51,313 bases of DNA. Origin: Octopus bimaculoides (lineage: Eukaryota). This document shows, piece by piece, positions 1-49,813 of this stretch. Under the pieces are notes generated by a model, which worked only from the letters and a program-made list of their open reading frames with translations, did no database searches and was not told the DNA's origin. Position 1 is the stretch's first letter, and each line of letters starts with the position of its first letter. The stretch covers positions 133,729,908 through 133,781,220 of the forward strand of contig NC_068981.1 in NCBI RefSeq assembly GCF_001194135.2, written 5' to 3'. The position numbers and the translations under genes were made by a program.

Positions 1-607
1 TATGAAGCAGCGTAAGGAATGGCTTAGCCCCAGTAAACAAGCGACACCGTGCGTGAAACAAGATCTCCATCCACGTAAAACGATGTTGTGTGTATGATGG
101 GACTGAGAAGGCATTATCCATTACGAATTGCTAGAACGGAACCAAATGGTCAACGCGGAACTCTATGTTCAACAGATGAAACGACTCAACACGGCCATTC
201 AAGAGAAAAGACCTAATCGGCAGCATGGAGTTCTTCTGCTGCACGACAATGCCCGCCCTCATATCGCCAATATGAGCGAGGAAGCCATTCAAACGTTTGG
301 CTGGGAAGTGCTGCCACACCCGCCGTACTCTACTGATTTGGTACCAACAGATTTCCACCTCTTTCGATCTCTTTCAAATGCTATGCGCGATGTTTCGTTC
401 AATACTGATGCAGAATTGAGATCTTGGTTGGATCAATTTTTCGAGTCGAAATCGGGTGATTTCTACCAACGAGGTATTGAAAATCTTGATGAAAGTTGTA
501 AACAACAAGGATGAATATATTATTGATTAATTAGTTGTTATTTTTTATTAAACCTTTTAAAAAATTTAAATTTAAAAAAACGGCGGAACTTAGTTCCCAA
601 CCCAATA
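1..607 (+). mobile_element. Mariner (Tc1/mariner DD34D) transposon, 3' part, pseudogenised
   Basis: Frame from nt 2 reads ...KTMLCV*WD*EGIIHYELL...LLHDNARPH...HPPYSTDLVPTDFHLF, i.e. the mariner WWD, HDNARPH and YSPDLAPSD motifs with two TGA stops. A deletion near 498 shifts the C-terminus VNNKG*YIID*. The right TIR is followed by TA. Confidence 0.95.
577..607 (-). repeat. Mariner terminal inverted repeat plus TA target site
   Basis: Reverse complement reads TA-TTGGGTTGGGAACTAAGTTCCGCCGTTTT, a typical mariner TIR start (TTRGGTTGG). TA is at 606-607. Confidence 0.85.
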
Positions 608-3850: not shown

Positions 3851-5253
3851 GAAACTTTGAAGGGAGTTGAAGAATATATATGTTCAAAACTTTATGGCAA
3901 TAAATATTTAAGTGCTAAAATTTTTCTATAGATATATAAATACGATTGTTATTTCGTGTGCGTTTTACAATACCTTTCTCAGTGCATTAATTTGTTCAGA
4001 TATCGATAAATGTTACCAAATTCTAAGTATACGTACAATTACACAAGCACATACACTCGAACACATTCGTATTCATACAATTATATACACCATCGTCTCT
4101 ATATAGTTTTTTATTTGTTATAATGACTTCAATTTTCTGTGAGACATTCAAACATAATCCACGTGCATACAAGCATAAGTACATACATATATATGCATAC
4201 ATACATATATGCATACGTAAGATCATACATACTTGTGACTTTTGAGATTTATGGTATGTTTGCTTGTGTTACTGTACCTGTCTTTGTAGGTAATTATACT
4301 ACCACTCAAAAACACAGTGTTACGAACACAAAATACGCACACACTAATACATGTGCGATTTTATACATGCTTGTGCGCATTTGTGTGTATATATCTCTGT
4401 ATATTAGTGTAGTGTCTGTGAATATATTTATAGACTTGTACTTGTTTCCATATACACGTATATGCATGATTGATGCATGTAATTTTATTTTAGGTATTCT
4501 GCATTGATAAATGCAATTTTTATGCACTGCATTTCGCATTTCTACTGTATAATCTGTGTGTGCCTAGTTTATGAGTTTACTGAAGTAATGACAGAGAATA
4601 AATATCGGTTTTCTCAGGATTCTTAGCCTTTATTTTGATACCACTCTAACCAAATTACAGGTTAGGAAAACACTGCGGAAAAGCAATCTTATTTGGCTAT
4701 TTAATAAACTGTTGGAATGTATTTGATTTATCTGGGATTCTTGAATATGAACGAGTAACACCATATTTACAGATTTGTTCTTGATTTATTCTAGAAGTCA
4801 AAGAAATCAATGCTGAAGACAATCATCTTACGGTGAAATATCGATAGATATCAAAGCATATAATGCTACTCTGAAAGAAGGTAGGAAGCTGTTACCACAA
4901 CTAGAATGGCTGTTTTTATTAAGCGTTGTGTTCAATGCGTTCCTTGGAAGGAAACTCCCACTGGATACTCTAGCATTATTTTCTCCTTTATCTGGAAAAT
5001 CTTCTGTAGTTTGGTAGCGAAATAAATGGCCAATGTAAAATAGTTTCACGTGCGTGTTGAAAAGAAGAAAGACAGAGAGGAGGTAAGTGAGAATAAAGTA
5101 AACGAGAGAAAGAGAAATACGAAAAGGAAGATATAAATGAAAATAGGAAATGTTCATATAATTTTCCTCTTCGAAAATCATCGCTCCGCCTTTTGCCTCA
5201 AAAGCGTTTAGTCGACAAATTTATGTTCTCATATTCTTTCTACTTCTCCCTCT

Positions 5254-5313
5254 TACTCTCCTCATACTCTCACTTTCTCCTTCTTCGCCTCATACTCTCA
5301 CTTTCTCCTTCTT
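5254..5313. repeat. Local ~28-bp tandem duplication in a CT-rich tract
   Basis: CCTCATACTCTCACTTTCTCCTTCTT occurs twice in tandem. Confidence 0.8.
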
Positions 5314-6399
5314 TTATATCTCCTTTCTCTTTGCATTGTACCCCGTCGCCTTTGTTCTCCTCTCTTTAATCCCGATGTCCACAACCGTTTTCAGGTAACT
5401 ATTTCATGTTCGTAACCAATCAAAGAAATAACTTTCAAATGAATAGTTGACAAGGTCATTTGAGCATCAGAGAAATTTGAAAGAGGAATGACGCTCGTAA
5501 TTGGATAGAAGGTACATGCCGTTTACGTGACCTCGGAAAAATATAGGCTTGCCAATTGTTTAATGAAAGAGAACGACACGGTGAAATCTTAAACTTGGCT
5601 TTTATATTTCGCGAAAAGAAACTGGATAACTCGCAAAAGAAAATATATAAACAATAGCATTTGGTTATAAAATCCACAAAGTTTAGATTTCGACTCTTTA
5701 TCTATGGAATTCATCAAGTAAATTAGAAACAAACAAGCAGAAATCTTTATTGTTATGATTCATGTAAAATAGTCAGTGAAGAATTTTAATACATTCTTTT
5801 GATAGAGTTAATAAGTGCCATGTAGAGAAATCATTGAAATGTCTCCTTCGGAAACACTTTTTAGTTTTAAATATTTAACGAGTTAGAATTTGAGACTAAG
5901 CTTAGCTGGCTTTTCGCACACTAAAGACTCTGATTTTGATTTTAATAGTATTCGTATTAACGGATATGTGTTGCATAAACGGTAGAGAGGTGGATTAAAG
6001 GCTTTGCGATATATAATTACGTCTCTTTGAGTTCTTCAAATCTCGCCACGGTATTCTTTCCTCTCATCCTTCAGGGGCAGACAAACAGACATCTGTAATA
6101 CACTGGAGTTGAATTAATCCACAATGCCCTGTTCCTAAACCACTTGACCTTGTATCAATATTATTCATGTCATAAAATAAATTTAATTTGAATTATTTTT
6201 TATTCAAACAATACAAAAATAATTTTTATTAAATGTAACTCAAACTATAAAGGAAACATTACATAAATTTACATAATGTTGATTGTTTTAAAAGGTTTAA
6301 AAACTGTGATTAAGGGAAGGGCTTAATTGTATATTTTGTTTACGTTTTTGAATTTTTGGGCTTCATTTTCTTTATCATTTTTTCTTTCAAATATTGATT

Positions 6400-6609
6400 T
6401 CAAATTTTGGTACAGGGCCTGCCAGTTCGGGGGATAACACAAGTCAATTACATCGGGCCCAATGTTCAACTTGTATTTATTTGATCGACCCCGAAAGGAT
6501 GAAAGGCAAAGTCAACCTCGGCGGAATTTGAACACAGAACATGAAGAAGGACGAAATGCCGCTATGCATTTTGCCCGGCATGCTACCGATTCTGCCAGCT
6601 CACCACTTT
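6400..6609 (-). mobile_element. SINE family A (tRNA-derived head AAGGCGGCGAGCTGGCAGAA..., core GAGGTCGACTTTGCCTTTCATCCTTTCGGGGTCGATAAA)
   Basis: Reverse complement aligns with the other family A copies in the window. Confidence 0.9.
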
Positions 6610-7041
6610 AAATGACATGCCACTAGGCATTTTTGTCCGATGCCATAATGGTTCAGCCAGCTAACCGACTCCCTTTTGCAGATATTAAAGTAATAGTGTT
6701 AATATAACATATGCGGCAACTGAAATTTAAATTACAAAACCTCGACCTAACTATATCATGAAATTAATACCTCAAAGTTAGAAATTTGTGTGGAAAGGCG
6801 TTAATCGATTAAATCAACCCAGAGCAACCTATAAGGATTTGAATACAAGTGTCGAATTAAAAAAGTTACGGCGATTATGAAACATGTTTGTAATTCCATT
6901 GTTAATTGATACAAAACATTTACAAATTATCTATAGACGGAGACAAATGCTGGTTAAAAAAATAATAACACTTGTACCAGTAATTATGCTTAGCGCATTC
7001 TTACACGGCATTTATTAACCTTCAATATTTCTGCTTACGTT

Positions 7042-7260
7042 AAGGCAGCGAGCTGGCAGACACGTTAGCACGTCGGGCGAAATGCTTGGTGATATTTCGG
7101 CTGTTTTCACGTTTTGAGTTCAAATTCTGCCGAGGTCGACTTTGCCGTTTATCCTTTCGGGGTCGATAAATAAAGTACCAGCTGCGTTCTGGGGTCAATC
7201 TAATCGACTGGGCCCCCTCCCCCCAAAATTTCGGGCCTTGTGCCTAGAATAGAAAAGAAT
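7042..7260 (+). mobile_element. SINE family A, full length
   Basis: A-box-like GAGCTGGCAGA, B-box-like GAGTTCAAATT, the shared core and a GTAGAAAAGAAT-type tail. Decayed TSD AATATTTCT(G/A)CTT on both sides. Confidence 0.92.
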
Positions 7261-7350: not shown

Positions 7351-7585
7351 AATAATAAAGATGATAATCCTTTCTATTATAGGAAAAAGGCTTGAAATTT
7401 TGTGGGGAGGGTATAGTCGATTACATCGACCCCAGTGCTCAACTGGTGCATATCTCTCATCGATTCCGAAAGGATGAAAGGCAAAGTCAGCCTCAGCGAA
7501 ATTTGAACACAGAACGAAGAGACGGGCGAAACGCCGCTAAGCATTTTGTCCGGCACGCTAACGATTTTGCCAGCTCACCACCTTA
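7351..7585 (-). mobile_element. SINE family A, full length; inverted relative to 7042-7260
   Basis: Reverse-complement match to the family consensus seen in this window. Confidence 0.9.
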
Positions 7586-7596
7586 ACTACGATGAC

Positions 7597-7880
7597 AATA
7601 ATAAAGATTTTAGATTTTGCACAGGGTCAACAGTTTTTGAGGGGAGGGTAAGCCCCAGTATTTGACTGCTAATTTACCGCCTTAAACATTATAATAATAA
7701 TTAGCATTTTTAACATAGGCGCCAGTCCACAAATAGCTTAGTAAATAGGCATAGTCGATAAAATTGACCCAGCACTTAACTAACCAAGGTAGAATTTGAA
7801 CTCAGATCACAAAGAACCAGAACAAATACTGTATAGCATTCGATTCGATGTTCTTAGAATTCAGCCAATCCACCACTCTG
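7597..7880 (-). mobile_element. Degenerate or internally deleted SINE family A fragments
   Basis: Tail (GCACAGGGTCAACAGTTTT...GAGGGGAGG), GAATTTGAACTCAG and head remnants. Confidence 0.55.
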
Positions 7881-10156: not shown

Positions 10157-10443
10157 TGTCAGATCTGCATGACTGCCCAGTTTGAATGGTGCAGGTGTTC
10201 CAGAGACGAAGGACTTAAGATCGAATGTCGATGGTTAAATACAAGTCGGTCGATTCAGTAAGCGGGGACCCACCCCGGTGAGTAGGGTCCGGTGTGCAGA
10301 GCTTTCGACTGGAAGGGCTTGCATAAGTAAGGTATTTGCAAGTTTTTAATTGTTCGTGGGGGACACAAATCACTTCTTTGTATAAACAGAGGACAATATC
10401 AATATGAGTGTTTGTCTGTGTGTGAGCGTAAATAATTTTTTAC

Positions 10444-10656
10444 AAGGCGGCGAGCTGGCAGAAACGTTAGCACGCCGAGTGAAATGCTTAGCGGTATTTC
10501 GTCTGCCGTTGCGTTCTGAGTTCAAATTCCGCCGAGGTCGACTTTGCCTTTCATCCTTTCGGGGTCGATAAATTAAGTACCAGTTGCGTACTGGGTAGAT
10601 CAAATCGACTAGCACCCTCCCTAAAAATTTCAGGCCTTGTGCCTATAGTAGAAAAA
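10444..10656 (+). mobile_element. SINE family A, full length, young-looking
   Basis: Near-consensus head, core and tail. Confidence 0.95.
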
Positions 10657-12404: not shown

Positions 12405-12616
12405 TCTCAAGTTTTAGCACAGGGTGAGCAGTTTTTGAAGGGAGGGGTAATCAGCTATATCGACCCCAGTACTTGACTGCTACTTATTTTATCGACCCCG
12501 AAAGGATGAAAAACAAAGTCAGTGATAGCGGAATTTGAACTCAGAACGTTAAGACGGATAAATGCCGCTAAGCATTTTCTCCGGTGGGATAGAAGTTCTA
12601 TCAGCTCACCACCTTA
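12405..12616 (-). mobile_element. SINE family A
   Basis: Reverse-complement match to the family. Confidence 0.88.
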
Positions 12617-13148: not shown

Positions 13149-13240
13149 CATACATTTTATGAGTATGGTCATAACACCTGTAGATGTAGGCAACGTCCTA
13201 ACTTGTAGGTATGTATTTATGCATACATATATATATATAT

Positions 13241-13285
<45 letters not shown>

Positions 13286-13321
13286 ATGCATGTATGTATG
13301 TATGTATGTATGTATATACGT

Positions 13322-13600
13322 GTATAAGGGATGACCACTAGGTGGACATCCAATATGCTAGAAAGAGGTCATCAACGACCCAACCACAAAGAAAAATAAT
13401 GTTCGCCAGAAAAAAACTTCGCAAAACACCATAACAAGACAAAATGAGAAATATACAGAATAAAGAATTAGTTGTGTACCGCGGTTTCGAACATTAACGT
13501 TTTACTTACGTAACAACATCCGAGTTCTCATCAGCACAACCGTTCGAGAATCAATATAATTTGCAGAACTATACACGAATTGTCTTCATGAAATAAGATT
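13322..13600 (-). mobile_element. PLE-type terminal repeat (pseudo-LTR) carrying a hammerhead; homologous to 25595-25950
   Basis: Shared GATGACCA...GTGGAC.TCC.ATATGCTAGAAA block, with the hammerhead at the same relative position. Abuts a CA/TA microsatellite. Confidence 0.75.
13471..13540 (-). ncRNA. Minimal type-I hammerhead ribozyme, intact core (GUA cleavage site)
   Basis: Minus strand GTTGTG-CTGATGA-GAAC...GTTC-GAAAC-CGCG-GTA-CACAAC: 6-bp stem I, G-C closed stem II and palindromic ACCGCGGT stem III. Confidence 0.9.
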
Positions 13601-13690
13601 TGCTCAGCCACTTGCCCGTTAATTTCACGAGCAAGCTGTTCCGTTGATCGGATCAAATGGGACCCTCATCGGCGTAACCGACGGAGTGCC
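13601..13690 (+). mobile_element. 5'-truncated SINE family D 3' end, flanked by the 11-bp TSD ACTATACACGA
   Basis: Direct repeat at 13568-13578 and 13691-13701. Confidence 0.8.
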
Positions 13691-13696
13691 ACTATA

Positions 13697-13945
13697 CACG
13701 ACGACGAGGGTTCCAGTTGATCCGATCAACGGAACAGTCTGCTCGTGAAATTAACGGGCAAGTGACTGAGCACTCCACGGACACGTGTACAGTTAATCGT
13801 AGTTCTCGGGGAGATTCAGTGTGACACAGAGTGTGACAAGGCTGGCCCTTTGAAATACAGGTACAACAGAAACAGGAAGAGTGAGAGAAAGTTGTGGTGA
13901 AAGGGTACAGCAGGGTTCGCCATCACCTCCTGCTGAAGCCTCATG
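13697..13945 (-). mobile_element. SINE family D (central domain shared with 31222-31520)
   Basis: Reverse complement CATGAGGCTTCAGCAGGAGGTGATGGCGAACCCTGCTGTACCCTTTCACCACAACTTTCTCTC aligns to 31318-31400. Confidence 0.8.
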
Positions 13946-14009
13946 GTTCTCATTCCTAAAGTATTTTTCGATGTTATTATTATTATTATTATCATTATTA
14001 TTATTATTA

Positions 14010-14047
<38 letters not shown>

Positions 14048-14149
14048 GTAATAATAATGTAAATAATGTATAAGTGTCATCTGCTAATCTCATAATCTAC
14101 TCAGATGTATAGAGATGTTTAAACTCGCACATGGACAGAGAAATCAATA

Positions 14150-14850
14150 TTTGTGCGAACGTATAGAAGATATAACTGATGATCTTTGTTCTGACAGTTT
14201 ATCGACTATGTGACGCACAACACATGAGAACAATTCTAGAGAATGCTGCAAAATCAGTTTGTTTTTCATGGCTATCAATGAAGGTGAAACCTGTCAATTT
14301 CTTTCAATAATGGCACACAACTCAAAGAAACCTTCAGAACCTTGGATTCTACGTTGCTGGTAATAAGTAAAACTACACGCAAGGAACTAGCTTGAAGTGG
14401 CTATAACAAGCTTCAAAACATCCAGTAATCAAGTATCTCAAAGGCAACAATTCTGGAATTCTTCAAGGCATTTATAGAGGATATCCGTCTCTAAGGAGTT
14501 GAAATCATTTCTCATCAAAAAGGAGCTTTAAGATCGCTTTGTTGCTATGTACACCAGGGTTCAAAATATCTCATTATGTGAGCGCAAGGCTGAAGAGGAG
14601 ATTTATAGACACATCGTTTAACGTAGGTTAGGCTATGCTAGCCATTACTATCATGGAAAACATCATATTTTGGAAACTTTTGCACCCTAAAAGAGGACGA
14701 AAACCACTCAAGTACATTGACATCAATGGCAGCGACACGCAACATGAAACTGAAGACAAACCAAAGTTAATGTGGTACATAAACACGTGGCGCAGCATTA
14801 TGAGATATGTCGCGGTTGCGGCTGTCCAAATAAGAAACAGAGACACTGAA
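14150..14850 (+). mobile_element. Decayed RTE-group LINE RT C-terminal region
   Basis: LENAAKSV..NGTQLK...ELA*SGYNKLQNI..SISKATILEFFKAFIEDIRL*GVE...RLGYASH..IIFWKLLHPKRGRKPLKYID...WRSIM. Confidence 0.75.
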
Positions 14851-14939
14851 AATATCATATAAAACTACTGAAGAAAAAAAAGCTCTTCGACTTTTCATCT
14901 TCCCTAAAATTTTAGACCTTCGGCCCACAGTGGAGGGAT

Positions 14940-15590
14940 ATATTATTATTATTTCATATACGCACAACAGCTTAAACTATTGAAAAAGATTTCCTAACAT
15001 CGGGCTACAACAATTAACCCGAGATGCCAAGAAACTTTATAAGTACCCTAGATGTCGCTAATGATGCTGTTTTCTAGAGCTGCATTAAACTAGGCTTTAT
15101 ACCTATTTCGTCTATCCTGGCAGTGAGACTGCTCGTAAATGCTTTCTGAGAGCATTCCTGTTAACAGCTTCCATACTAATGGTAAGCAAATGATTGATCT
15201 ATAATTACTAGCTATACTGTCCTCACTTTTGTCTTTCATAAGAAGTACTGTTCTCCTTCTTGTCATCAAACTATTTAAGCAATGCTGAAGTTGTTCTCAC
15301 AGTTTCCCATGTATGCTACTCTTGAACTAAATTTGGTCCCGGGCCCTTCCAATTCGGCATTCTTCCTACCACTTTACTCATTAATACACGAGTTAGTTTT
15401 AGATCTGGCTGCTTCTCACTGACTACTTCTTCCTTCACTTCCTTTAACCATGCTGCATCTCCATTATGATTGACTGGCTTATCTCAGATATTACTCCAGA
15501 ACTTTCTAGCTTCTTCTGCATTAGGCTTCTCATCTTCAGCACTTCTTTCTACACTATTTTCTATAAAATCTCTGTTGGTCTGCCTCAAAC
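14940..15590 (-). mobile_element. Internally deleted R4/Dong-clade LINE with (AAT)n tail
   Basis: Minus strand PNAEEARKFWSNI*DKPVNHNGDAAWLKEVKEE...MPNWKGPD...RTVLLMKDK...NYRSIICLPLVWKLLTG, joined to the C-terminal EIGIKPSLMQL*KTASLATSRYL, then a 3' UTR and ATAATAAT. Confidence 0.85.
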
Positions 15591-15593
15591 GAT

Positions 15594-15852
15594 AAGGCGG
15601 CGAGCTGACAGAATCGTTAGCATGCCGGGTGAAATGTTTAACTGCAGTTCGTCCGTCATAACGTTCTGAGTTCAAATTCTGTCGAGGTCGACTTTGCGTT
15701 CCATCTTTTCGGGGTCGATAAATTAAGTATAAGTGAAACGCTGGATTCGATGTAATCGACTAGTCTTCTCCCACCAAAATTTCAGGCCTTGTGCCTTTAG
15801 TAGAAAGAATTATTATTATTATTATCATTATTATTATTATTATCATTATTAT
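15594..15852 (+). mobile_element. SINE family A, copy 1 of tandem trimer, (ATT)n tail
   Basis: Full head, core and tail. Confidence 0.93.
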
Positions 15853-15853
15853 T

Positions 15854-16081
15854 GAGACGGTGAGCTGGTAGAATCGTTAGCGCACCAGGAAAAATGCTTA
15901 GCAGCTTTTCATTCGTCTTCGTGTTCTGAGTTCAAATGCTGCCGAGGTCGACTTTGCCTTTTATCCTTTCGGGGTCGATGAAATAAGTACCGGTTGAGTA
16001 CTGGGTTCAATATAATCGACTAGTCCCCTCCCCATAAATTTCAGGCCTTGTGCCTCTATTAGTAGTAGTAGTAGTAGTAGT
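15854..16081 (+). mobile_element. SINE family A, copy 2 of tandem trimer, (AGT)n tail
   Basis: Full head, core and tail. Confidence 0.93.
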
Positions 16082-16311
16082 AAGGCGGTGAGGTGACAGA
16101 ATCGTTAGCACGCTGGGGCGAAATGCTTAGCGGTATTCCGCCCGTCACTACGTTCTGTGTTCAAATTCCGACGAGGTTGACTTTGCCTTTCATCCTTTCG
16201 GGGTCGATAAATTAAGCACCGGTGAAACACTGGGGGCGATATAATCGACTAGACCCCTCCCCAAAAATTTCAGGCCTGGAGCCTTTAGTAGAAGGGATTA
16301 TTATCATTATT
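16082..16311 (+). mobile_element. SINE family A, copy 3 of tandem trimer
   Basis: Full head, core and tail. Confidence 0.93.
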
Positions 16312-17007
16312 AAAAAAGACAATCAAATAATGATATAGTTCTCACTATATAATATGAGATTAAAAATATAGAAACTTGTCAAGATAAATTTCGGAAAGTA
16401 TGCCAATAACTAAAATGATTTTGTTTCGTATGTTAATCACGAATTATTTTCTATCATTAAGTGTGTATATATTTCGATAAGTTGAACCCAATATTATCAC
16501 CAAGAAAGAAGGAAAAATAGACGCAAAAAACACATTAATATACCGAGAACGAAGCTAAAATTGTTTTTCTTTTTTTTTTTCACAATACTTATTAGTTTGA
16601 AATATATTTACTCCAAACTGACAGTATTTTCTATAATTGTGATTGGTTTTGCTTTTATTGGACTTTTTTATACTATTATTTAGAGCTTTCAGAGTGGCCG
16701 AAAAGATGCTGCGAAGTGGATTGAATATCTTACAGTGTCTAGTTTTCTCTTTCTCTACTTGCTGAATTCGAAATTTTATGAGTTGGCCTTTCATACATCC
16801 GGGTTTTGGTGGCACAAAGCCCACAGCAAGTATTGAAATCAGTTCATCGTCAACACCCCTCCCCACCTATAATTTTGTGTCAATTGTTCCAGTCCAAAAT
16901 AGCGACATATAAAGCTACAATAACTATAAAAATACTCTGATAGCTTTGACTTCATAGATTTGAGATTTGCATAATCTATGGTGTCTGATTGGTGGAGATA
17001 ACTTACA

Positions 17008-17160
17008 GATGTAAGCATGGCTGTGTGATTAAGCAGTTCGCTTCGCAACCAAATGGTTTCAGGTTTGGTTCCACTCTGTGGTACCTTGAACAAGTGTCCC
17101 TTACGATAGTCTAGTGGGAACCAGTGCCTTGTAAGTGAATTTGGTAAACTGTATGTATAA
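17008..17160 (+). mobile_element. SINE family B (GGCGTGGCTGTGTGGTAAGAAG head), 5' half
   Basis: Aligns with the heads at 29361 and 40249. Confidence 0.7.
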
Positions 17161-17534
17161 CTTGCTATATATAGTAACAAGGAGAATGGAGTGAACAGTT
17201 CGATATATTGTATAATTTTACAATTGTTTCATCAACATTTCACCAGAAGATTGTTGCTACAATATTGTCATATAATATACGAAATAATACATCATATCAG
17301 AATTAGCTTATCAATACCAGAAAATATCGACTCATCGATTTGCTGAATGAACCCGTATTTCATGGAATATATAAAGGACAAATAAATAAATAAGACAATA
17401 CATCTTTGTGTCTCCAAAATCATACGTCTATTAATATCTAGTTTAAAGTCAATAAGGTGACTCATCACATCTTTCAGTACCTACTTTGTAATTCTTATAA
17501 AGAATTTATCCTATTTTAAATCTTAAATATATAT

Positions 17535-17572
17535 ATCATCATCATCATCATCATCGTTTAACGTCCGCTTTC
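17535..17572 (-). mobile_element. 3' end of a LINE/SINE with (GAT)n tail, truncated by a gap
   Basis: Reverse complement GAAAGCGGACGTTAAACGATGATGATGATG. Confidence 0.5.
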
Positions 17573-20500
17573 NNNNNNNNNNNNNNNNNNNNNNNNNNNN
17601 NNNNNNNNNNNNNNNNNNNNNNNNNNNNNNNNNNNNNNNNNNNNNNNNNNNNNNNNNNNNNNNNNNNNNNNNTGGTGGTGTGCGGTGTGGTGTGGTGGTG
17701 TTGGGGTGTGGAGGAGGCGAGAGTGAGGGAAGCAAGGGTCGGGTGAAGTGGGATGGGATGCATGTGTATGATTAAACAACAACTTGAAGACCATTTTTGC
17801 GCATTTGGGGAGGAAAGGTACCCATGATAATAATGTCCATCTTCTGCCACTTCTCGTCCCTCATATGTATTGGAGTGCCATAGCTGTTAATTCCTCCCGG
17901 AGTTGACAGAATATAGCGTCAGTGAAGTACTATGGTCGACATTTGTAAATAAAATATTTTATATAGTACCAGGTACAAGAAATGAAGAATATATAAAGAT
18001 ATATCAAGAAAATATAGAATGACTTTAATAGAAATAGAGTGAAAGATAAAAGATAAGTGTAAGAGAAGCGGAGACAGAGATTGAATAACGTACATGGAGT
18101 GAAAATCTGACTAAATTATTTATTCATACCATTGGTTTCACACTGTTCTTTTTCATATTTCGTGTTTTTAAAAAAAGACATAATTCAAATCTCTAGATTT
18201 ATCTCTAATGCATGGAAAATATTAATTGTTAATTCAGATTTTCTGCCAGAGGCAAAGAAAGGAAGTTAACAGATAATTCAAGATCATTATTGGTGATATT
18301 ATTTAATTACAAATCTTACTTTCCTCGCCACAAACCTACCATTTTCTTGTTAGCTTTGGCAGAGTGTCGAATAAACATGCCTTCCAGAACTTACATCGTT
18401 CTAAGTTCAAATCCCACTAAGATTACTTTTATTTTGCGTAAGAAAAAAAGATGGAGTTAAAATGGATCGTCGTCGTTCACGATGATGAATAGTCAGTTTT
18501 TCGATCAATTGAATCCTCTGCTCATTAAATTAGCATGCAAATGACCTAACATTCCATATAAACGTGAAATGTACGCGAACTCTTAATGGAATTCTCACGT
18601 AGAATTTGCGTTACATGGTGTATGACAAGGCTGTGCTTTCGAATCACAGGTACACTCCATTCGATAGACTTCCGCACAATTTCTGTCCATCTAATTCCCC
18701 TTATGACGTTTGTATTGACCCAAGACAATGGTAAAAAGGCACCACGCAGCGGAATTGAATTCAAGATTTCGTGATTGCAAATCAGTATTCTTAACCATTC
18801 CACATTCACAATACTTTATTGCTATCACTTGAATAAATATCACAGTTATACATTAAAGTCGATTCGCTCGAGTATACCCTGCACCTAAAATTTGTTGATT
18901 TGTGCCAAAGCCAGAAACAATGACTTATTCTTTAATTAATCAATTTTGGTATTTTCTCACTTTTTGCAAAATAATAGATGTAATTACTAAATTATGTGTA
19001 ATTTCTAAAAAAAAATCTAATTTTAAATTTTACTACATTTTCAAATTGAAATCGGTGTGAAATATAATGATGGTTATTACTAATCTTAAACCCAAGAGAA
19101 ATTTTATTTCGTCTACTTTCAATAATTCTTAATTTGTTATCCGGGAGGGAAAATAGTTGCAATGTGTTTACAATGTAGACAGTGTAGTAAACAGATTAAC
19201 TTAACTCTATAATCGTTCCTCAAATCAACGATTTCTTTCGTAAATTTTAAACTACACAAATAGCCGGTGGGCAACGTATTTTATCAAATTTTATATCATT
19301 CTTTTAAAAATATTATTTTTACTGTTCGGGTGAAAATTTTAAATCATCGGTAAATTAATATCGAATTCTATATTATATAGCAAATTAATATCGATGTTTG
19401 ACAAGATAAGAAACCAACTTATTGGCCAAAGGCTCAAACGTCTCTAACAAAAATATTCAATTCTCAATATTTCAATCTAGTTAACTATGAATCAGTGCTG
19501 TGTGTTAAAGAAGTGAGAATTTACGCTGTATGATTAATGAATTTTTTATCAGCTTTGTCTACACTGTATATCAATACTCTTCTCTGTGACGTAAATATAC
19601 AATACAAGTGACTACAACAAATGTTCTAACACATAGAACATGATCTCAAAGTCTGTCAAATCACAGTGTTTTAGAGTCGACTCTAACCTTTGACAAGTTC
19701 TTATTTTACCGTTACTTGAAGGTTGAAAGACTTTATTGGGGTCCGAACTCAGAGCGTTAAGGGACGTATGCCAATACTGTAAGACGTTATCCGACGTCCT
19801 GACGATTTTATGTTTTGTTAATAAGTACAAGGTCAAATCTCGTAACTATGGTATATTGACAGTTTTTTGTTAATATGTTTTTCGGTAATTTGTTTTTTGC
19901 TAATCTAGTAATATTTAAACGTTTTTCAATAGGAAAGTTCAGGTGAGACAGGAAGAAAAGAATATCTAGCTAGGTCTATCTCCAATCAATAGCTTAAGGT
20001 TGGTTATAATGAAAAATGGTGGTGAATGTTTTTGAACATCTAGTTTCTGATTCAGAATTAAAACCGACTTTTCCTTGCATTATTTTCCTAAATTAGACGG
20101 TATGAATAGGTAAAATGAGATTAAGATTACAGAATATGCATTTAATGCACAACACAGCATGAAATAGAATTAAAATAATTAAAATATTACGAAACTTGGT
20201 TGGCTGTGGATGAATTAAGAATGCAAACATATTCATTCTACATATTTGTTATGTAGAGAGAAAAAATCGGTAGTCTCTTACGGACCATTTCCCGACTTGT
20301 TGGTCACTCCTCAGAGAAAAAGTACCAGCTTCCTTCTCCAGTCCATAACATACATCAATTAAAATTAATCAAATTTTATATCATTGCTTTTAATTAAAAT
20401 ACCACCTCTTCCGCTGATAAGTTTTCACATCGAATAGGGAAAATAAATAAGCAACAACTTGCTGTTGGCTTTTATGTTTCGCTGTTATTGTTATCTTGAA

Positions 20501-21256
20501 CCAGCAGAGCTACGATCAATTACGTTTACTGCACCTGGAACCACATTATTTCATATCATTTCTTTTCTAAGACGGCTTGGTATTATTTTGCAGGAATATT
20601 TGATTCCGTCAGTTTGAGCGCTTAGCTTGGTAAGTTAAGGATATTTATCAACTATAGAAGAACTTGAGCTTGCATCGATCTCGGAGGCATTTTTGGTAGC
20701 TTCTATAACAGATTATTTTACTTAAGGACATAACTCACACATTTTCAAAAGAAGTCAATTTGTAAGTAAGACTTTTCACTTGAAAATTCATGTTAAAAGT
20801 GAAGTGTAATTGGTTTCAACTAAAAACCATATTGGAATAGCAGGATATTTTTCTCCTGTCCTACGGCACCAATAGGAAGAATATTTCAAAATTAGAAATC
20901 CCAAACATATCTTGGTAAAAGAAATTGATTCCGCTATTAAGAAAAGCATCGATGAAAATTGTTTTGTTCACATTCTGTTGAATATCATCATCCTTTCATA
21001 AAATTGTATGCGGGTGCAATGAAGTTCTGTTGCTCAATGTACATGTTTTTGTCTTTTTTTTTCGAAAGTCTGTCACATAGCGAGTGCTAGAATGCTTTAG
21101 GTCTTTTTTTCCTCGTCTGTTAGAATGTTTAAAACATTAAACATCCAACAAGGTGATCGCTTCCAACAGTGTCGTCTTTTTTTTTTTGTCCTTCAAGTAG
21201 TAAGTTTGATAGGGCTTATCATACCTAAATTCTTAATTAGCTTCCTCCTCTTTCTT

Positions 21257-21287
<31 letters not shown>

Positions 21288-21309
21288 TTCTTTAAGATAA
21301 TATCCCAGT

Positions 21310-21900
21310 CTTTTGTAAATGCCTTGTCTTCAAGACGGAAAACCTCAATGATACCACATAATACCGACATATTGATCCCACATTAAACATCAAAGACGTG
21401 ACGGAAGCAGTTGCAAACAAACCCTTCCCTCATCATCTCTCTCTCTCTCTCTCATCATCTCTCTCTCTATCTATCTATCTCTCTTACTTTCTCTCTCTCT
21501 TACTTTCTCTCTCTCTCTTACTTTCTCAATTCTGATGTACCCAGAGTACAGTAATATCTACCAAACACTGTTTTTATTTCCGTATTAATGACATACTTGC
21601 AATATTCCCTAACATACAACCTTATGTTGGTAATACCTTTCCATCCCTTTTTAGCTTCTCCACACAGATGTCATCTCTAAACACTTCAAACAACTCACAC
21701 CATACACACATTTCCTCCATTATCAATGAATGTGAGAACATGGCTTTCTAGTCTCTTCCAACAGCGCAAAGACTAAATCTATTCTCAATATATCAATTAA
21801 ACAGATTTGATCTCACTACCACACACCATCAAAACTCTCGAAGTCGCTACAAATGCCAAGCCTCACGATGTGTGGTGTTTTCACATAGTAACCAAACACC
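21310..21900 (+). pseudogene. Heavily decayed CR1/jockey-group RT fragment interrupted by (CT)n
   Basis: DVP..STVI...INDILAIFPNIQPYVGNT corresponds to GVPQGSVL...INDL...IHSYADD. Confidence 0.45.
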
Positions 21901-21963
21901 ACAAAGCTTTGATTCCTCTATGGGTGCAAAAAATACTTTGTCTCGAATCAATTTGATCCCTTT

Positions 21964-22180
21964 AAGGCGGCGAGCTGGCAGAAATGTTAGCACGCCGGGT
22001 GAAAAGCTTAACGATATTTCGTCTGTCTCTACGTTCTGAGTTCAAATTCCGCCGAGGTCGACTTTGCTTTTCATCCTTTCGGGGCCGATAAATTAAGTAC
22101 TTGTTGCGTAATGAGGTCGATCTAATTGACTGGCCCCCTCGCCAAAAATTTCGGACCTCGTGCCTAGAGTAGAAAAGAAT
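21964..22180 (+). mobile_element. SINE family A with a perfect 13-bp TSD
   Basis: ATTTGATCCCTTT at 21951-21963 and 22181-22193. Confidence 0.97.
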
Positions 22181-22539
22181 ATTTGATCCCTTTCAAAACT
22201 CAAGTAATACTTATATTAAATACTGCTCACATGTATTAAATGTTGCTGTTTCTGTACACTGCTCTATCTATGTGCCATATCTATTTTTCTGATTTATTAA
22301 GATTCTCACCATGCTACAATCAGCAACCCACTGATGCGTGGTTTCCTCCTTTTGCTCTTCCTTCTCTTCTGTCGTTACCAACACAGCCTCTACTCCTCTG
22401 AACTGGTTAACCGCATATCTTCCCGACCCAGATCCAACCCAATCCATCAATCACTTTTCTTGTTATCCTCACTGTAGTCATCTCTCAGGTACATTTTAAA
22501 CGTGTCACGCAATCCTCCCGCCAGTATTTTATCTGCAAA

Positions 22540-23310
22540 ACCCATCCAGCCATCCATCTTCTCCCCCTCACTGTTCCTGTGGGATTCGTGTGGGGTAGAG
22601 AGCCCTCAGGCACTTCTCCGTAAGGTCCCGTCAGAAGCAATCGCCATTAGACTTCCCAGTTGGATTCCCAAGCGTGACCAACTAAAACTACTGATATTAT
22701 CCAACCATCTCGTTCTTGGTTTACCTTAGGTCTCTGCCGGTTGCCCTGACTTGAATAATTTGTCTTGCGGTTCTTTCTAATTGCATGTAGTACCTGATCT
22801 GAAACCTCTAAATGCAGAAAAGTAGCAGATAAACATGGAGAGACTCCCTGATCGCCGAGTTACACACCCTGTCGAGTAACGTTACTCCAGCGATCCTCCA
22901 GAAGAACGCCATTTCAGCAGCTTGTATTCGCGATAATACTCTTAACCGAACATTCATGACCGTGGTTGAAGATGGACATGAAACCAACTTAAAGATAGCG
23001 TGTTTGACTTTGTCACCAACCTCTCCTCGTCTGAAGATCGAAGGCTGGAGCTGACACATGACTGTGCCAGTACCTGCCATTCTCGCATCCAATCAACCTC
23101 CTGATTTCCGTCACTCGTAATACCTAAACTTATCCGCTTCTCTCAGTAGTGTTCCACTAACATGCAAGATTCACTGGAAAGGATTTCTTGAGCGGACTAA
23201 CGTCTCAGTCTTCACAGCGTTAATTCCCTGCAAACAACCTCCCAAATGCTTCAGCTGAATCCCCGGTCATGAGTACTTCTACACATCTGCTGACTTACAT
23301 GTAGATATAA
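22540..23310 (-). mobile_element. RTE LINE (Expander/Rex3-like) 3' fragment
   Basis: KTETLVRSRNP...LSRIQAAEMAFFWRIAGVTLLDRVCNSAIRESL...GKPRTRWLDNISSFSWSRLGIQ, ending in a GATGG-type tail. Confidence 0.88.
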
Positions 23311-23954
23311 ACAACTGAAATATTATCATGTTATATTGATGACAATTTTACTATCTCTGTGATGTGTTGCTAATGACACAATTGCAAGCACTACCTTTCC
23401 TGTTTGTTTCCTAATTAATGAAATCAAGTTTCCTATTGCGTAGTCTTATGTCTATATTTTTCGGAGTTTGATCCAAAAACGAAATAGTTAACGAATAACA
23501 AACATTATAAGATTGTACAACTCTAAAATTGCTTTTCTTCTCGTTCTATAGATCTTCAGCATTATTTAAACTTACCTTCTTTTTTATATTTTTTATCGCT
23601 CTACTTTGACGCTTTTCTTCGTTCTATGTGAGGTATGAGTTAATTCGCTTTACTCTAAAAAGACAAAAAATATATATATATTCATGGTTTCATAACTATT
23701 TTCTTCACTCCTCTTCGATTTATTAAAAGGAATAGAGAGATCGCAAAACAAAAAAGTTTCCTAAAGCCATATAAACGTTTTCTTTCAGATGAATTATTTT
23801 CCCTTTTACCTACAATGCACACATTCCAACGATTTCAGCTCAAGCGGAAGTCATCTTCGCATTCAAATGTTTCTTCTGGCAAATTTCAGCGTAAAATTTC
23901 TCAAAGAAAAATACAAAACAAATATGAAAATCATTGAAAATATTACGACTGCTA

Positions 23955-24093
23955 AACACACACACACGCGCGCGCACTCACGCGCACACACACACACACG
24001 CACACACACACACACAACACACAATACACAAATACAAACACACACACTCACAAATACACACACACACATATATATGTATGTACGTATATATAC

Positions 24094-24126
<33 letters not shown>

Positions 24127-24136
24127 NNNNNNNNNN

Positions 24137-24167
<31 letters not shown>

Positions 24168-24269
24168 AGCATATATGTGTGTGAGTTTATATGTATATAT
24201 ACATGTAAATAAATATGTATGTGTGTATATATATGTATCTATATATGTTTGCATATGTATGTCTGTATG

Positions 24270-24303
<34 letters not shown>

Positions 24304-24332
24304 TGTATGTATGTATGTATGTATGCATGCAT
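23955..24332. repeat. Compound (CA)n/(TA)n/(TATG)n microsatellite
   Basis: Direct reading. Confidence 0.95.
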
Positions 24333-24535
24333 GTATTGAAATTAGCAGTCTATTAGGAAATAGCAAGAACTAACGAGAGAAAACTATTAAAACGTAACAT
24401 GTAAAGAACTTCCGCGGAGGGAACAGAGAAAATTGCAAATACGAATGCAATTATAGATAGTCAGAAGCATAAAAAGAAACCGGAGAGATTTCTCGTAATA
24501 CATTAGAAAGTGAATAAATGGAGTGATGCAGAAAT

Positions 24536-24536
24536 A

Positions 24537-24577
<41 letters not shown>

Positions 24578-24583
24578 AAACAT

Positions 24584-24656
<73 letters not shown>

Positions 24657-24709
24657 GACAGACAGACAGATAGACTGACAGACAGAAAGATAGAGAGACA
24701 GACATACAG

Positions 24710-24785
<76 letters not shown>

Positions 24786-24786
24786 G

Positions 24787-24843
<57 letters not shown>

Positions 24844-24844
24844 C
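24536..24844. repeat. (GATA)n/(GACA)n satellite, ~310 bp
   Basis: Direct reading. Confidence 0.97.
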
Positions 24845-25564
24845 AAATCAATGGCGATTATATATGATATATTATTTCTTAAATTAAAATATATATATAT
24901 AATTTATAGTGTATTTCTTTTCTTTTTCTTTGTACAGTTAAGTCTAGGTAAAAGCACAGACGTTTCGAATCCTCGCCGGAGCAACTCCGATTTTGCTCTT
25001 TTCAGAGTTGCGATCGTAGAAACAACGAAAACCTTAACGATTCTTCGATTGTATATTTATTACAAGACTGCATCCTTATTACTTATCGACTTAGATCTTT
25101 AATGTAGGTAGGTTTCTAATGTCTATCTTATAGAAAAGTTTGTCTTTATTTTGTTTATCACAAAATATTACAACTGTTACGGAAACGTAACTCGGTTACC
25201 AAATGAAGTTTATGTTAACTATTTTCTATTTATCTTCGCAAAAGAATTTCCTCCATTAATCTTCCTATCTATTTCTATCGAATAAAAAAATACACTTTTA
25301 TAACAAGGTTTGGGCTTCGATTATATATATAATACTATCACAGGCCAATAACAGATCCTCTTGCGGGCACTCGAACTGCTAGAAATAGCAGGCAAAAATC
25401 CTTCGATCAAATGTTCCACCGTTTTAAAAGAAGACAAATTAGATAATGCAGTCTTCAGTGCCATTTAAGGAAAGAAATCGTGAAGATTGGATGGACGGTA
25501 TTGAACACTCAATCAGGATTTATATCCGTCTAAGCATAGACATCACTAAATCATATCCAAATAC

Positions 25565-25594
<30 letters not shown>

Positions 25595-25612
<18 letters not shown>

Positions 25613-25950
25613 TATTAATGAGGGTAGAAATTGATATTAATCAATTAAAACCAGTGGTCTAGCATATTAAAAAAATCCGAAGATTAAAATTATATTACAT
25701 ACAAAAATAAGAGGAATGACCAGCAAATGTGGACTCCTATATGCTAGAAATAGATGCCGAATCATCTAACCACGAAAAGATATGTTCTCAGTAAAAAATC
25801 TAGCGGCACAACAGACTGTAAAAGGGAAAGACAAATGAAAAAATACAAAATTAAAAACGATTAACCTACGTACCATGGTTTCACCTGTTAAAATTTACAT
25901 AAGTAAATATCTGCAGGATCGTCAGCGTAGTCTGTCGATTTGAAATATAA
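25595..25950 (-). mobile_element. PLE-type terminal repeat with hammerhead, same family as 13322-13600
   Basis: Alignable over ~200 bp. The 3' end runs into (TA)n. Confidence 0.75.
25866..25930 (-). ncRNA. Minimal type-I hammerhead ribozyme (GUA site; first stem-II pair mismatched)
   Basis: CTACG-CTGACGA-TCCTG...CAGGT-GAAAC-CATG-GTA-CGTAG. Confidence 0.85.
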
Positions 25951-26327
25951 TTCCCAGAACTAGACACAAGACGTCCACCCGAAAGGGAGCACGTGTAGAG
26001 TTCTACAAATTACATTCAGTGTATCCTTTCAAATAGGTCGTTTCTACCAATCAATATAGTTGAGCATTTGGTTCTTCTTTCACTCTACTTCCAATAGAGA
26101 TATCTATTTCCAAGCCTTTGAACATTTACTTAACTCACATATTACTCTATACTTCTCCTTTATTAGTTCTCTCCTTATTAATTTCTTTACCCCTTCTCTC
26201 CACATGCGCTACCTTTGACGTCATATCTACTAACGACTTTTTAAAATACTTAATAGCGTTCTGTTCATCATTTACACAGTCATCACATTTGTTAAAATGT
26301 CTTATTATTGAGTTTGATTCTCTTTCA

Positions 26328-26416
26328 TTCTCTGATGAGAAGATTACATTATTTTACAACTCACCATTTATTCCTTTGGAATAAAACCAATGTTGTCTTC
26401 GAAACATATGTCGGAA
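26328..26416 (+). ncRNA. Minimal type-I hammerhead ribozyme (GUC site)
   Basis: TTCT-CTGATGA-GAAGATTACATT...AATGTTGTCTTC-GAAAC-ATAT-GTC-GGAA. Stem II pairs 11 of 12 positions, with an inner hairpin TTTATTCC/GGAATAAA and palindromic ACATATGT. Confidence 0.87.
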
Positions 26417-26451
26417 ATAAAAGAATTTGAATAACACCTGCGTTTAACTCC

Positions 26452-26509
<58 letters not shown>

Positions 26510-26892
26510 GTATGTATATATGTGTGTTTGTGTATATATAAATATATATCCATGTACATACATGGAACCACACACACATATATATGTGTGTGTGTATGCA
26601 TGTGTATGTGTGTTTGTGTGTTTGTATGCACATATATATCTGTGTGTGTGTGTGTGCACATTCATGTTTATGTATGAAACTATATATGTATGNNNNNNNN
26701 NNNNNNNNNNNNNNNNNNNNNNNNNNNNNNNNNNNNNNNNNNNNNNNNNNNNNNNNNNNNNNNNNNNNNNNNNNNNNNNNNNNNNNNNNNNNGGTTGGAT
26801 GTATGTATGTTTATGTATGTGTGTGTTTATGTATGTATATGTTTATATGTGTGTGTGTGTGTGCATATGTATATATATATGTATGTATATAC

Positions 26893-30074: not shown

Positions 30075-30359
30075 TTGACACATTACGTTCCGAGTTCAAA
30101 TTCCACAGAAGTCGACTTTGCCTTTCAGTCATTCTGAATCAATCAAATAAATATTCTTTTCTACTCTAAGCACAAGGCCTGAAATTTTGGGGAAGGAGCC
30201 AGTCGATTAGATTGACGCCAGTGCGCAACTGGTACTTAATTTATCGACCCTGAAAGAATGAAAGGCAAAGTCGATCTCGACGGAATTTGAACTCAGTACG
30301 TAAAGACAGACGAAATACCGCTAAGCATTTCGCCCGGCATGCTTCCAGCTCGCCGCCTT
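30075..30359. mobile_element. SINE family A: 5' fragment (+, ~30075-30135) converging on a full copy (-, 30153-30359)
   Basis: GAGTTCAAATTCCAC.GAAGTCGACTTTGCCTTTCA on plus and its complement within the minus copy. Confidence 0.85.
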
Positions 30360-34904: not shown

Positions 34905-35490
34905 TATGACGTCACGAAGCGTGTACAACAAAAAAATACGAAGTACGAGTACATGGAATATGAACTATTTTTTCGAACAACGAAAGACACAAATGGAAAA
35001 CAAGACAAACCACATAAAGGACGACCCTTCATCAGTTGTTGACTGATTTTCTACTCTCGTATTTCGAGCATTTAACAACAATATACGCTTTCGATAAAAC
35101 AGTTGCTCCTGCAAAGCAAATTAAATAAAATTTGAGATTTTGCAGAGGATCAAAATTGGTAACACAAACAGGACGGTGAAAAAACAAACTCCTTCGTTTT
35201 ATTCTCTTTCTCTCTCTTATTCTTTTACCTCCTCTTCTCCCACTTTTCTATCCTATTACTCTGTCACTCTCTCTCCCTTACTTCTCCTCCCTTGCTTGCG
35301 TCGCTCCCACGTGACCATGGGCCATTTTTCTTTCTTCTAACTTATGTTTCTTTCTTTGTCTCCGTTGTAGCTGGAACAAGGAAGAAGTGTTCTTGTCTGT
35401 CTCCTATCCAAGCTTGATTTACACAATCACCACCACAATCTCATATAGGCTTAGCAGCCCTTCCTGTTTGTAAGTATCGACATATACGTA
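34905..35490 (+). mobile_element. Diverged third copy of the 33617-34416 family
   Basis: Shares TTTTTCGAACAACGAAA, TTC(A/G)TCAGTTGT and CAAAGCAAATTAAATAAAATTTG. Confidence 0.75.
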
Positions 35491-36685: not shown

Positions 36686-37116
36686 AAGGTTGTATGCTGG
36701 CAGAACTGTTAGCACACTGGGCAAAATGCTTAGCGGCATATAATCCATCTTTACATTCTGAGTTCAAATTCCGCCGAGGTCGACTTTGCCGTTGCCTTTC
36801 ATCTCTTTCGGGATTGATAAAATAATCACCAGTCATGCATTGGGGGTCGATGTAATCGACTTAACCCCATCCTCTAAAATTGCTGACCTTGTGCTAAAAT
36901 TTGAAACCATTAATAAAGAAGAAGGCGATGAGCTGGTAGAATGTTTAACACGCCGGGAAAGAAACAGTCATTTCGCCAGTCTTCACGTTCTGGGTTCAAA
37001 TTCTACCTAGGTCGACTTTGCCCTTTATCCTTTCGTACTCGACGAAATAAGTAACAGATGAAGTGATCGATTAGCTCCCTCCCAACAAAATTTCATGCCT
37101 AATAGAAAGGATTAAT
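36686..37116 (+). mobile_element. SINE family A head-to-tail dimer (36686-36915, 36922-37116)
   Basis: Two consecutive head-core-tail units. Confidence 0.88.
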
Positions 37117-43676: not shown

Positions 43677-43829
43677 GACTTTTTTTATATATATGTATGT
43701 GAATGCATATGTATGTGAATGCATATGTATGTGAATGCATATGTATGTGTGTATGCGTATGTATGAATGTGTTAGCGTCTTATGAAGCTAAATTCATAAG
43801 TTCTAAAATTGCAGAAGAATGCGTTGCTG

Positions 43830-46033: not shown

Positions 46034-46087
<54 letters not shown>

Positions 46088-49749: not shown

Positions 49750-49813
<64 letters not shown>

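Follow-up and report, generated by a model that had tools for sequence, protein, structure and literature searches.

Minimal hammerhead ribozymes of the Penelope type in probable retroelement fragments at an Octopus bimaculoides locus

We analysed a stretch of 51,313 nucleotides of the Octopus bimaculoides genome (NCBI RefSeq assembly GCF_001194135.2, contig NC_068981.1, positions 133,729,908 to 133,781,220 of the forward strand), hereafter the window, in which a sequence-only reading had described two minus-strand copies of a repeat that each carry a hammerhead ribozyme. The window holds four complete hammerhead motifs, referred to here as A, B, C and D, that represent three or more sequence families, one of which comprises both A and B (Table 1). 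Repeats of the microsatellite type follow them on their 3' sides, and D stands head to head with a 5'-truncated and frameshifted Penelope-like element (PLE) of the Hydra clade that retains parts of a reverse transcriptase (RT) and a GIY-YIG endonuclease. As argued below, this arrangement, the predicted folding of A and B, and the anatomy of related elements in other animals point to the 3' termini of PLEs as the source of the four motifs.

Hammerhead motifs and microsatellites of the window

The motifs were defined with a descriptor that requires CUGANGA, GAAA, a stretch running from A15.1 to U16.1 and an H17 other than G, with stems I and II no shorter than 4 and 3 bp, respectively. Scanning with this descriptor gave four motifs with a palindromic or wobble-palindromic 8-nt stem III, against 0.003 expected per dinucleotide shuffle (300 shuffles). 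Permitting one core mismatch returned the same four motifs, against 0.08 per shuffle, and revealed no additional, degenerate copies in the window. The core residues C3-U4-G5-A6-N7-G8-A9 and G12-A13-A14 are perfect in all four motifs, as is the A15.1-U16.1 pair, while H17 is A in A, B and D, and C in hammerhead C; the lengths are 4-7 bp for stem I and 4-6 bp for stem II. Two regularities go beyond what the descriptor requires, namely a C-G pair at 15.2-16.2 in four of four motifs and a combined length of helix II and loop 2 of 36-62 nt. In every case stem III consists of an 8-nt self-complementary stretch that is unable to close a hairpin. The motifs differ at positions 10.1/11.1, which form a G-C pair without a bulge in A and C, whereas in B and D each side of stem II bears a U.

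In hammerhead A, a stem I of GGUUGUG/CACAACU is followed by CUGAUGA, a stem II of GAAC/GUUC around a 31-nt loop, and a 3' part composed of GAA, the 8-nt stem III palindrome ACCGCGGU and A17. The corresponding parts of hammerhead B are CUACG/CGUAG for stem I, CUGACGA, a stem II of U-CCUG...CAGG-U that includes the U.U at 10.1/11.1, GAA, the 8-nt palindrome ACCAUGGU and A17. Hammerhead C has the stem III ACAUAUGU and the cleavage triplet GUC, and hammerhead D the stem III ACAGUUGU, which is palindromic with a G.U, and the triplet GUA. Outside the core, C and D are unlike A and B and unlike each other. A weak fifth match (Table 1) combines CUGAGGA...GAAA with a non-palindromic 9-nt stem III and G.G at 10.1/11.1, has no microsatellite nearby, and is probably a product of chance, 0.1 such matches being expected per shuffle.

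If the measure is a microsatellite that spans 20 bp or more and lies no further than 260 nt downstream, A, B and C qualify, as do 7.2% of window positions, while the repeat of D reaches only (CA)7 before an assembly gap and so falls below 20 bp. This gap (46091-46433) interrupts the (CA)n at the 3' end of D, and (CA)n resumes at 46037-46090. B and C, on opposite strands, face each other head to head at a distance of 397 bp, (TA)n borders the pair on both outer flanks, and pairs of opposite-strand hammerheads about 100-700 bp apart have been reported for PLEs (PMC4209133).

Table 1. Hammerheads, repeats and retroelement remnants located in the window
Feature	Positions	Strand	Remarks
Mariner/Tc1-type transposase fragment	107-511	plus
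SINE-like copies	7040-7250, 10442-10652, 15592-15802, 15852-16062, 16081-16291, 21962-22172, 36696-36821, 36970-37060	plus
SINE-like copies	6387-6612, 7457-7604, 12417-12520, 30182-30343, 48965-49061	inverted
Compound microsatellite (TGTA)n/(TG)n/(TA)n	13204-13326		plus-strand sequence; directly at 3' end of copy A
Copy A of the A/B repeat	13327-13600	minus	~274 bp; 36.5% GC; non-coding; leader ~59 nt, hammerhead, tail ~143 nt
Hammerhead A	13470-13541	minus	type I; predicted cut between 13477 and 13476, after A13477; about 145 nt to repeat, (CATA)n(CA)n(TA)n
Near-perfect palindrome	13601-13772		172 bp
Weak hammerhead match	20274-20319	minus	probably chance
(GATA)n/(GACA)n array	24537-24843		about 77 units
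(TA)n/(TGTA)n microsatellite	25561-25607		3' side of copy B
Additional 3' segment of copy B	25612-25705		absent from copy A
Copy B, portion homologous to A	25706-25990	minus	delimited by alignment with A
Hammerhead B	25866-25930	minus	type I; predicted cut between 25871 and 25870, after A25871; about 255 nt to repeat, (TA)n(TGTA)n
Inverted duplication of B 5' end	25945-26016		hairpin at B/C head-to-head junction
Hammerhead C	26328-26416	plus	stem II GAAGAU/GUCUUC with long extension; predicted cut after C26412; 38 nt to repeat, (TA)n
Tail of C and repeat	26417-26549	plus	tail 38 nt, then (TA)n(TGTA)n from 26455
Second GIY-YIG remnant	43340-43680	plus	in-frame stops
tRNA-like sequence	43830-43901	plus	34.6 bits
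Tail of D and repeat	46434-46562	minus	tail ~115 nt into (CA)n at 46447-46434
Hammerhead D	46563-46645	minus	CUGAAGA; U.U at 10.1/11.1; predicted cut after A46569; about 115 nt to repeat, (CA)n, then gap
Hydra-clade PLE remnant	46659-48862	plus	5'-truncated, frameshifted; RT and GIY-YIG; head to head with D

Homology and pairing in copies A and B

Copies A and B align with 70% column identity across about 275-285 nt, with a Smith-Waterman score of 64 as compared with 20.6 +/- 2.7 for shuffled queries. No further copy was found within the window by blastn at word size 7, and the A/B-specific hammerhead pattern had no match in the metagenome contigs scanned. Two assembly gaps fall between the copies, at 17573-17672 and, inside a (TA)n run, at 24127-24136, and the finding made on A and B is independent of continuity across them. 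The sequence-only reading had thus located two minus-strand copies with complete hammerheads correctly, and the conserved core and palindromic stem III that it ascribed to them are intact in both. Its alignment of about 200 bp was too short, the 5' part of B continuing beyond position 25950, and its single repeat family has to be replaced by at least three unrelated families of hammerheads in the window (A with B, C, and D). Near the 5' boundary of copy A, at a distance of about 8 nt, ends a palindrome that is 83% self-complementary, has a minimum free energy (MFE) as RNA of -136 kcal/mol and is unique in the window; the 5' end of B likewise lies in a hairpin-forming duplication (Table 1).

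Because the homology of A and B is fixed by their flanks and by loop 2, comparing their helices constitutes an independent test of covariation. Stem positions are about 22% identical between the two copies as against 70% for the whole element. In three of the five pairs of stem I both nucleotides differ between the copies and complementarity is kept (U-A to C-G, G-C to A-U and U-A to C-G), and the same is true of three pairs of stem II (A-U to C-G, A-U to C-G and C-G to U-A), while the innermost stem II pair at 10.1/11.1 is G-C in A and U.U in B. By our own arithmetic, at least six of seven doubly changed pairs would stay complementary with P ~0.013 at 0.375 per pair. Despite being the only independent homologous comparison, with n = 2, the A/B alignment points clearly toward maintained pairing. 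Of the full covariation claimed earlier, the six pairs that have changed and remained paired are borne out, and the U.U in B together with the sample of two sequences leaves the word full unsupported. When A-D and one ctenophore hammerhead are combined in an alignment from which the loops were cut (loop 2, at 36-62 nt, aligns poorly across hammerheads), 90% of cells are paired compared with 59.8% in shuffles and 30-47% after sliding the partners, and 11 of 14 pairs vary on both sides, counts that for A-D are partly circular because the descriptor required pairing.

The predicted folding of A and B matches a ribozyme that works as a dimer. The MFE structures of the monomers contain stems I and II and no stem III, with modest z-scores of -1.3 to -2.0, while the MFE structure of the homodimer calculated by RNAcofold is a double hammerhead for both A and B, with a change in free energy relative to two monomers of -11.7 kcal/mol for A and -10.4 kcal/mol for B. 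In these double hammerheads stem II is intramolecular, the 8-bp stem III forms between the molecules, and the strands of stem I are swapped. Because any hairpin-rich RNA gains from homodimerisation, it is only the dimer structures of A and B that are informative here.

Penelope-like elements in the window and in other animals

The PLE remnant beside D was delimited with a profile hidden Markov model (HMM) built from 70 full-length homologues, which gave colinear matches at 46659-48859 that cover HMM positions 326-696 of 705 and are distributed over several frames. It retains the RT motif GGLYRDD, the thumb motif PYRK...SNH, WYNxPF and FSRNTIRISYS, a linker of the form CxCX5C (CNCKVKSHC), and a GIY-YIG core, VVYRCTIVTEAGNYIYIG, that has no CxxC and is accompanied by CELC...E...N...CMH. 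A CxCX5C linker, the lack of CCHH within the GIY-YIG core, and CxxC and CxH motifs around a conserved E and N are features of Hydra-clade PLEs (PMC8557442, Craig et al. 2021), with which the remnant agrees in linker and endonuclease. It aligns with homologues of 600-720 amino acids, and phmmer returned 2411 homologues; the homologue P0267 carries N-terminal RWK and DKT (not DKG) motifs; the window copy is truncated before these. Because Pfam gives weak matches, with a sub-threshold GIY-YIG only (E 0.002) and no RVT_1 match for homologues of 360-720 amino acids, the identification is based on alignment, the custom HMM and published motifs. Unlike its Hydra-clade homologues, the remnant is 5'-truncated and frameshifted, and its 3' untranslated region (UTR) contains a fragment of a short interspersed nuclear element (SINE; 48965-49061) and (GAAA)n, followed by (TA)n at 49753-49812, some 890 nt beyond the stop; between 47664 and 48340 the remnant also has a low-complexity insert, rich in N, of about 430 nt. 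None of A, B, C and D shows similarity to this UTR above that of shuffles, and the profile HMM found no Hydra-clade coding remnant adjoining A, B or C in the window. The link between the remnant and A-D is only by position, in the case of D, and by analogy, and not by sequence.

A second and different GIY-YIG remnant, NLIYLITCSECKRQYIGHT, has a CxxC inside its core, as do canonical PLE endonucleases of the CCHH type; it runs into a microsatellite of the (TA)/(TATG) type at about 43687, and no hammerhead was seen after it. The closest endonuclease homologue, P0001, is carried on the Logan contigs L006 and L007, with 77% DNA identity over 146 bp; L006 was read by eye without a hammerhead being seen, and neither contig was scanned.

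The profile search also identified homologues of about 700 amino acids in other animals, including the bivalve Solemya velum, the ctenophore Bolinopsis microptera and the coral Oculina patagonica, which are elements of about 2.4 kb with one open reading frame (ORF) each. From nine Hydra-clade loci that were fetched (identifiers given: L003-L005 and L008-L012), six contain a type-I hammerhead (L003, L004, L005, L008, L009 and L010), located 100-145 nt past the stop where the ORF is defined (L005 excepted), and none was detected in L011 and L012. In these six loci a tail of 5-115 nt leads from the hammerhead into a TA-rich repeat, which is interrupted in the ctenophore, and stem III is a palindrome or near-palindrome of 6-10 nt of the form AC...GU. 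Five of the six also have inverted partner copies close by, L005 being the unclear case. Helix II and loop 2 together measure 12-25 nt in the fetched loci as compared with 36-62 nt in A-D. The arrangement with a U on either side of stem II recurs in L003 at 519-568 (minus), 2819-2868 and 5217-5266 (both plus), in L004 at 6326-6371 (minus) and in L005 at 35378-35420 (minus), so that it spans ctenophore, coral and bivalve loci as well as B and D of the window, with stem sequences that are unrelated. With this recurrence, the U.U at 10.1/11.1 looks as though it may be a conserved variant of PLE hammerheads and not decay.

The remaining features of the window are mostly other repeats. A SINE-like repeat of about 210 bp is abundant in both orientations and has a B-box-like element, GAGTTCAAATTCC, and a conserved core, GTCGACTTTGCC...TTCGGGGTCGATAAATTAAGTA, for which no match was found in JGI metagenome contigs. 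The mariner/Tc1-type fragment includes HDNARPH (Pfam Transposase_1, E 1e-4) and shows 75-79% amino-acid identity to copies on two long ENA contigs of other species, L001 and L002, which have only mariner in common with the window (78-80%) and contain no hammerhead or SINE. The tRNA-like sequence, the sole match in the window at the Rfam gathering score, was not called by ARAGORN; it is probably either a pseudogene of a tRNA or the head of a SINE derived from one. Below the Rfam threshold, mir-297, mir-1277, mir-3149 and similar models matched at 13203-13326, 24038-24336 and 25519-25606, in each case on (TG)n/(TGTA)n/(TA)n microsatellites, and these matches were rejected as artefacts of repeat hairpins. 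The window has 14 assembly gaps, several of them within or beside microsatellites.

Origin of the hammerheads and alternative explanations

We consider it likely, from sequence and layout, that A-D are short, non-coding 3'-terminal pieces of PLEs from at least three families, each of which has kept a minimal type-I hammerhead of the PLE kind. Because the Hydra-clade loci of other animals show the same anatomy, with a hammerhead near the 3' end of the element and insertion at (TA)n, the layout around A-D, and that around A, B and C in particular, can be read as the layout of a PLE 3' terminus. The minimal hammerheads described for PLEs (Cervera & de la Pena 2014, PMC4209133; PMC6765202) are like A-D in their type-I topology with an open stem I and an intact core, in a helix III that is a short palindrome and forms only between two copies, in a helix II that is longer than usual, in helices that vary extremely within one genome with compensatory changes, and in occurring mostly as solitary copies with, in addition, opposite-strand pairs 100-700 bp apart. 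They sit at PLE termini; here D adjoins a PLE remnant, while a full-length PLE for A/B was not found. PLE hammerheads have a conserved G10.1-C11.1 pair and often one extra nucleotide after A9 (PMC4209133), in contrast to the U.U of B and D. Dependence on dimers in these ribozymes is credited to Lunse, Weinberg & Breaker 2017 in the account given by PMC6765202. The pairing of two ribozyme copies likewise rescues an unstable helix III in the avocado sunblotch viroid and in newt satellite 2, according to the summaries of Forster et al. 1988 in PMC4209133 and PMC6765202, so that cleavage comes to require RNA in multimeric form. Those satellite or viroid RNAs replicate or are transcribed as multimers, whereas A-D reside in dispersed fragments of retroelements. 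The head-to-head pairs B/C and D/PLE resemble the inverted insertions typical of PLEs, by analogy and with partners that in neither case belong to one sequence family. The general statement of the sequence-only reading that minimal hammerheads of PLEs have a short palindromic stem III and cleave as dimers agrees with the two publications on them, and its proposal of a non-coding, PLE-derived repeat gains support from the Hydra-clade remnant in the window, the matching layout in other animals and the double hammerheads predicted for the homodimers.

In a mechanism that draws on published work for dimer pairing and microsatellite-targeted priming (PMC4209133, PMC6765202, PMC8557442), pairing through the palindrome would join two RNAs from the same family, or two units in tandem within one transcript, in an 8-bp intermolecular helix III with swapped stem I strands. 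The resulting double hammerhead would have two active sites, and cutting after H17 would produce ends with a 5'-OH and a 2',3'-cyclic phosphate. Where the PLE is active, cleavage may cut transcripts that are tandem or read through down to unit length, after which reverse transcription by the element's RT would be primed at a target, usually (TA)n or (CA)n, that its GIY-YIG endonuclease has nicked. The solitary copies A-D have no ORF and no partner in cis for the predicted dimer, and they are most likely inactive, as insertions truncated at the 5' end and dead on arrival or as solo terminal units. Four perfect cores out of four, combined with 30% divergence between A and B, suggest that selection for pairing has acted in active master lineages, and not at these loci.

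Several observations weigh against a PLE-terminus origin with functional cleavage, in addition to the small sample and partial circularity that limit the covariation data. The Rfam hammerhead models gave no match to A-D at the gathering score or at E<=10 in slices of 13 kb, 581 nt and 101 nt, possibly owing to the 36-62-nt helix II insert and the absent helix III hairpin. The MFE structures of C and D are alternative folds and not hammerheads, and the U.U at 10.1/11.1 may weaken catalysis in B and D. No plus-strand hammerhead was recognised in the 3' UTR of the PLE remnant, even with one core mismatch permitted, and the window contains no autonomous PLE that shares the terminal sequence of A/B, of C or of D; the check proposed earlier, for an autonomous PLE with the A/B terminal sequence, thus came out negative within the window. 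Finally, PLE hammerheads cleave poorly and slowly in vitro (PMC4209133), and hammerhead mutants had no effect on insertion of an Anolis PLE in vitro (PMC11167929). That cleavage is necessary is doubtful.

The alternative that survives best is that A and B are a discrete non-autonomous family, SINE-like or the monomeric offspring of a non-LTR (non-long terminal repeat) retrozyme, mobilised in trans by PLE proteins, which we hold to be possible at somewhat less than even probability. The homology of A and B is lost at about the same 5' point, ~59 nt upstream of the hammerhead, and both share the 3' end TGGTCATYCC..TTAT; with only two copies, such a 5' boundary is indistinguishable from coincidence or from the loss of alignable signal. 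The units measure 274-285 bp at 36-37% GC, and thereby fit metazoan non-LTR retrozymes, which are AT-rich, non-coding units of ~170-400 nt with a type-I hammerhead (Cervera & de la Pena 2020, PMC7229834). Neither copy has a Hydra-PLE coding remnant beside it; since the hammerhead of Hydra-clade elements lies so close behind the stop, however, an equally short truncated copy of such an element would be non-coding too. Retrozymes have been proposed as non-autonomous relatives of PLE terminal repeats (PMC7229834; 10.64898/2026.07.22.740005), and monomer derivatives of PLE-related retrozymes are reported to be dispersed in genomes (Li et al. 2026 preprint, 10.64898/2026.07.22.740005), which speaks for such a family. 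Retrozymes form head-to-tail tandem arrays that give rise to circular RNAs, and their hammerheads are mostly canonical with loop-loop contacts, whereas A-D are of the minimal PLE type and all solitary, the window having no tandem arrangement and no second direct copy nearby for any of the four. By this defining arrangement A-D fall outside the retrozymes within the window, although their size and composition fit, and the earlier label of a retrozyme-like family is unsupported there.

Taking this alternative a step further, one may speculate that A/B form an uncatalogued discrete non-autonomous family derived from PLEs in which helices I and III serve as a family-specific dimerisation code, a proposal that we think rather unlikely. 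Both helices are intermolecular in the double hammerhead, and dimerisation is predicted to bring a gain of 7-12 kcal/mol to homodimers but of only about 0-0.8 kcal/mol to heterodimers among A-D, so that helices I and III could enforce pairing within a family. If true, such a code could explain why divergence in the stems outpaces that in the remainder of the element.

A separate question concerns the microsatellites, which the PLE-terminus model regards as insertion targets and which might instead be tails borne by the elements, generated by RT slippage or templated as 3' repeats as in many non-LTR elements. Although the microsatellite lies on the 3' side only at A and D, and the repeat types vary among the copies, we judge this improbable: (TA)n occurs on both outer sides of the B/C pair, of the coral inverted pair in L004 and of the hammerheads that occupy both strands in L009 and L010, which is what insertion into a repeat already present would produce, and an insertion bias of PLEs for (TA)n and (CA)n is documented (PMC8557442). 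From the earlier description of the family as microsatellite-targeting, the association is upheld, while targeting as such is not separable from element-borne tails.

That the hammerheads were exapted by the host, to serve for instance in RNA processing or regulation, and are under selection at their present positions would account for four intact cores out of four and is nevertheless highly improbable, given that the sequences are repeat-derived, with SINEs, PLE debris and a fragment of a mariner element around them, and that the copies are solitary, with no partner in cis. Chance matches in AT-rich repetitive DNA, for which the short descriptor, the low complexity of parts of the window, the probably accidental non-palindromic fifth match and the silence of Rfam might be cited, are effectively refuted by the shuffles and retain next to no probability, the more so as features outside the descriptor co-occur (a downstream microsatellite, the 15.2-16.2 C-G pair, compensatory changes between A and B, and the anatomy of PLE loci).

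Hammerheads at PLE termini, their dependence on dimers, the microsatellite bias and non-autonomous derivatives have all been published, and the class has been described since 2014. Within that frame, the PLE-terminus reading would make this locus a clean example of dimeric hammerheads of the PLE type, among them two homologous copies whose helices differ by six compensatory changes. Of modest interest to specialists are the recurrence of U.U at 10.1/11.1, where G-C is conserved, and the possible restriction of pairing to one family by helices I and III. The genome of O. bimaculoides appears to be rich in PLE debris, and since standard Rfam scans miss these ribozymes, such genomes would leave them unannotated.

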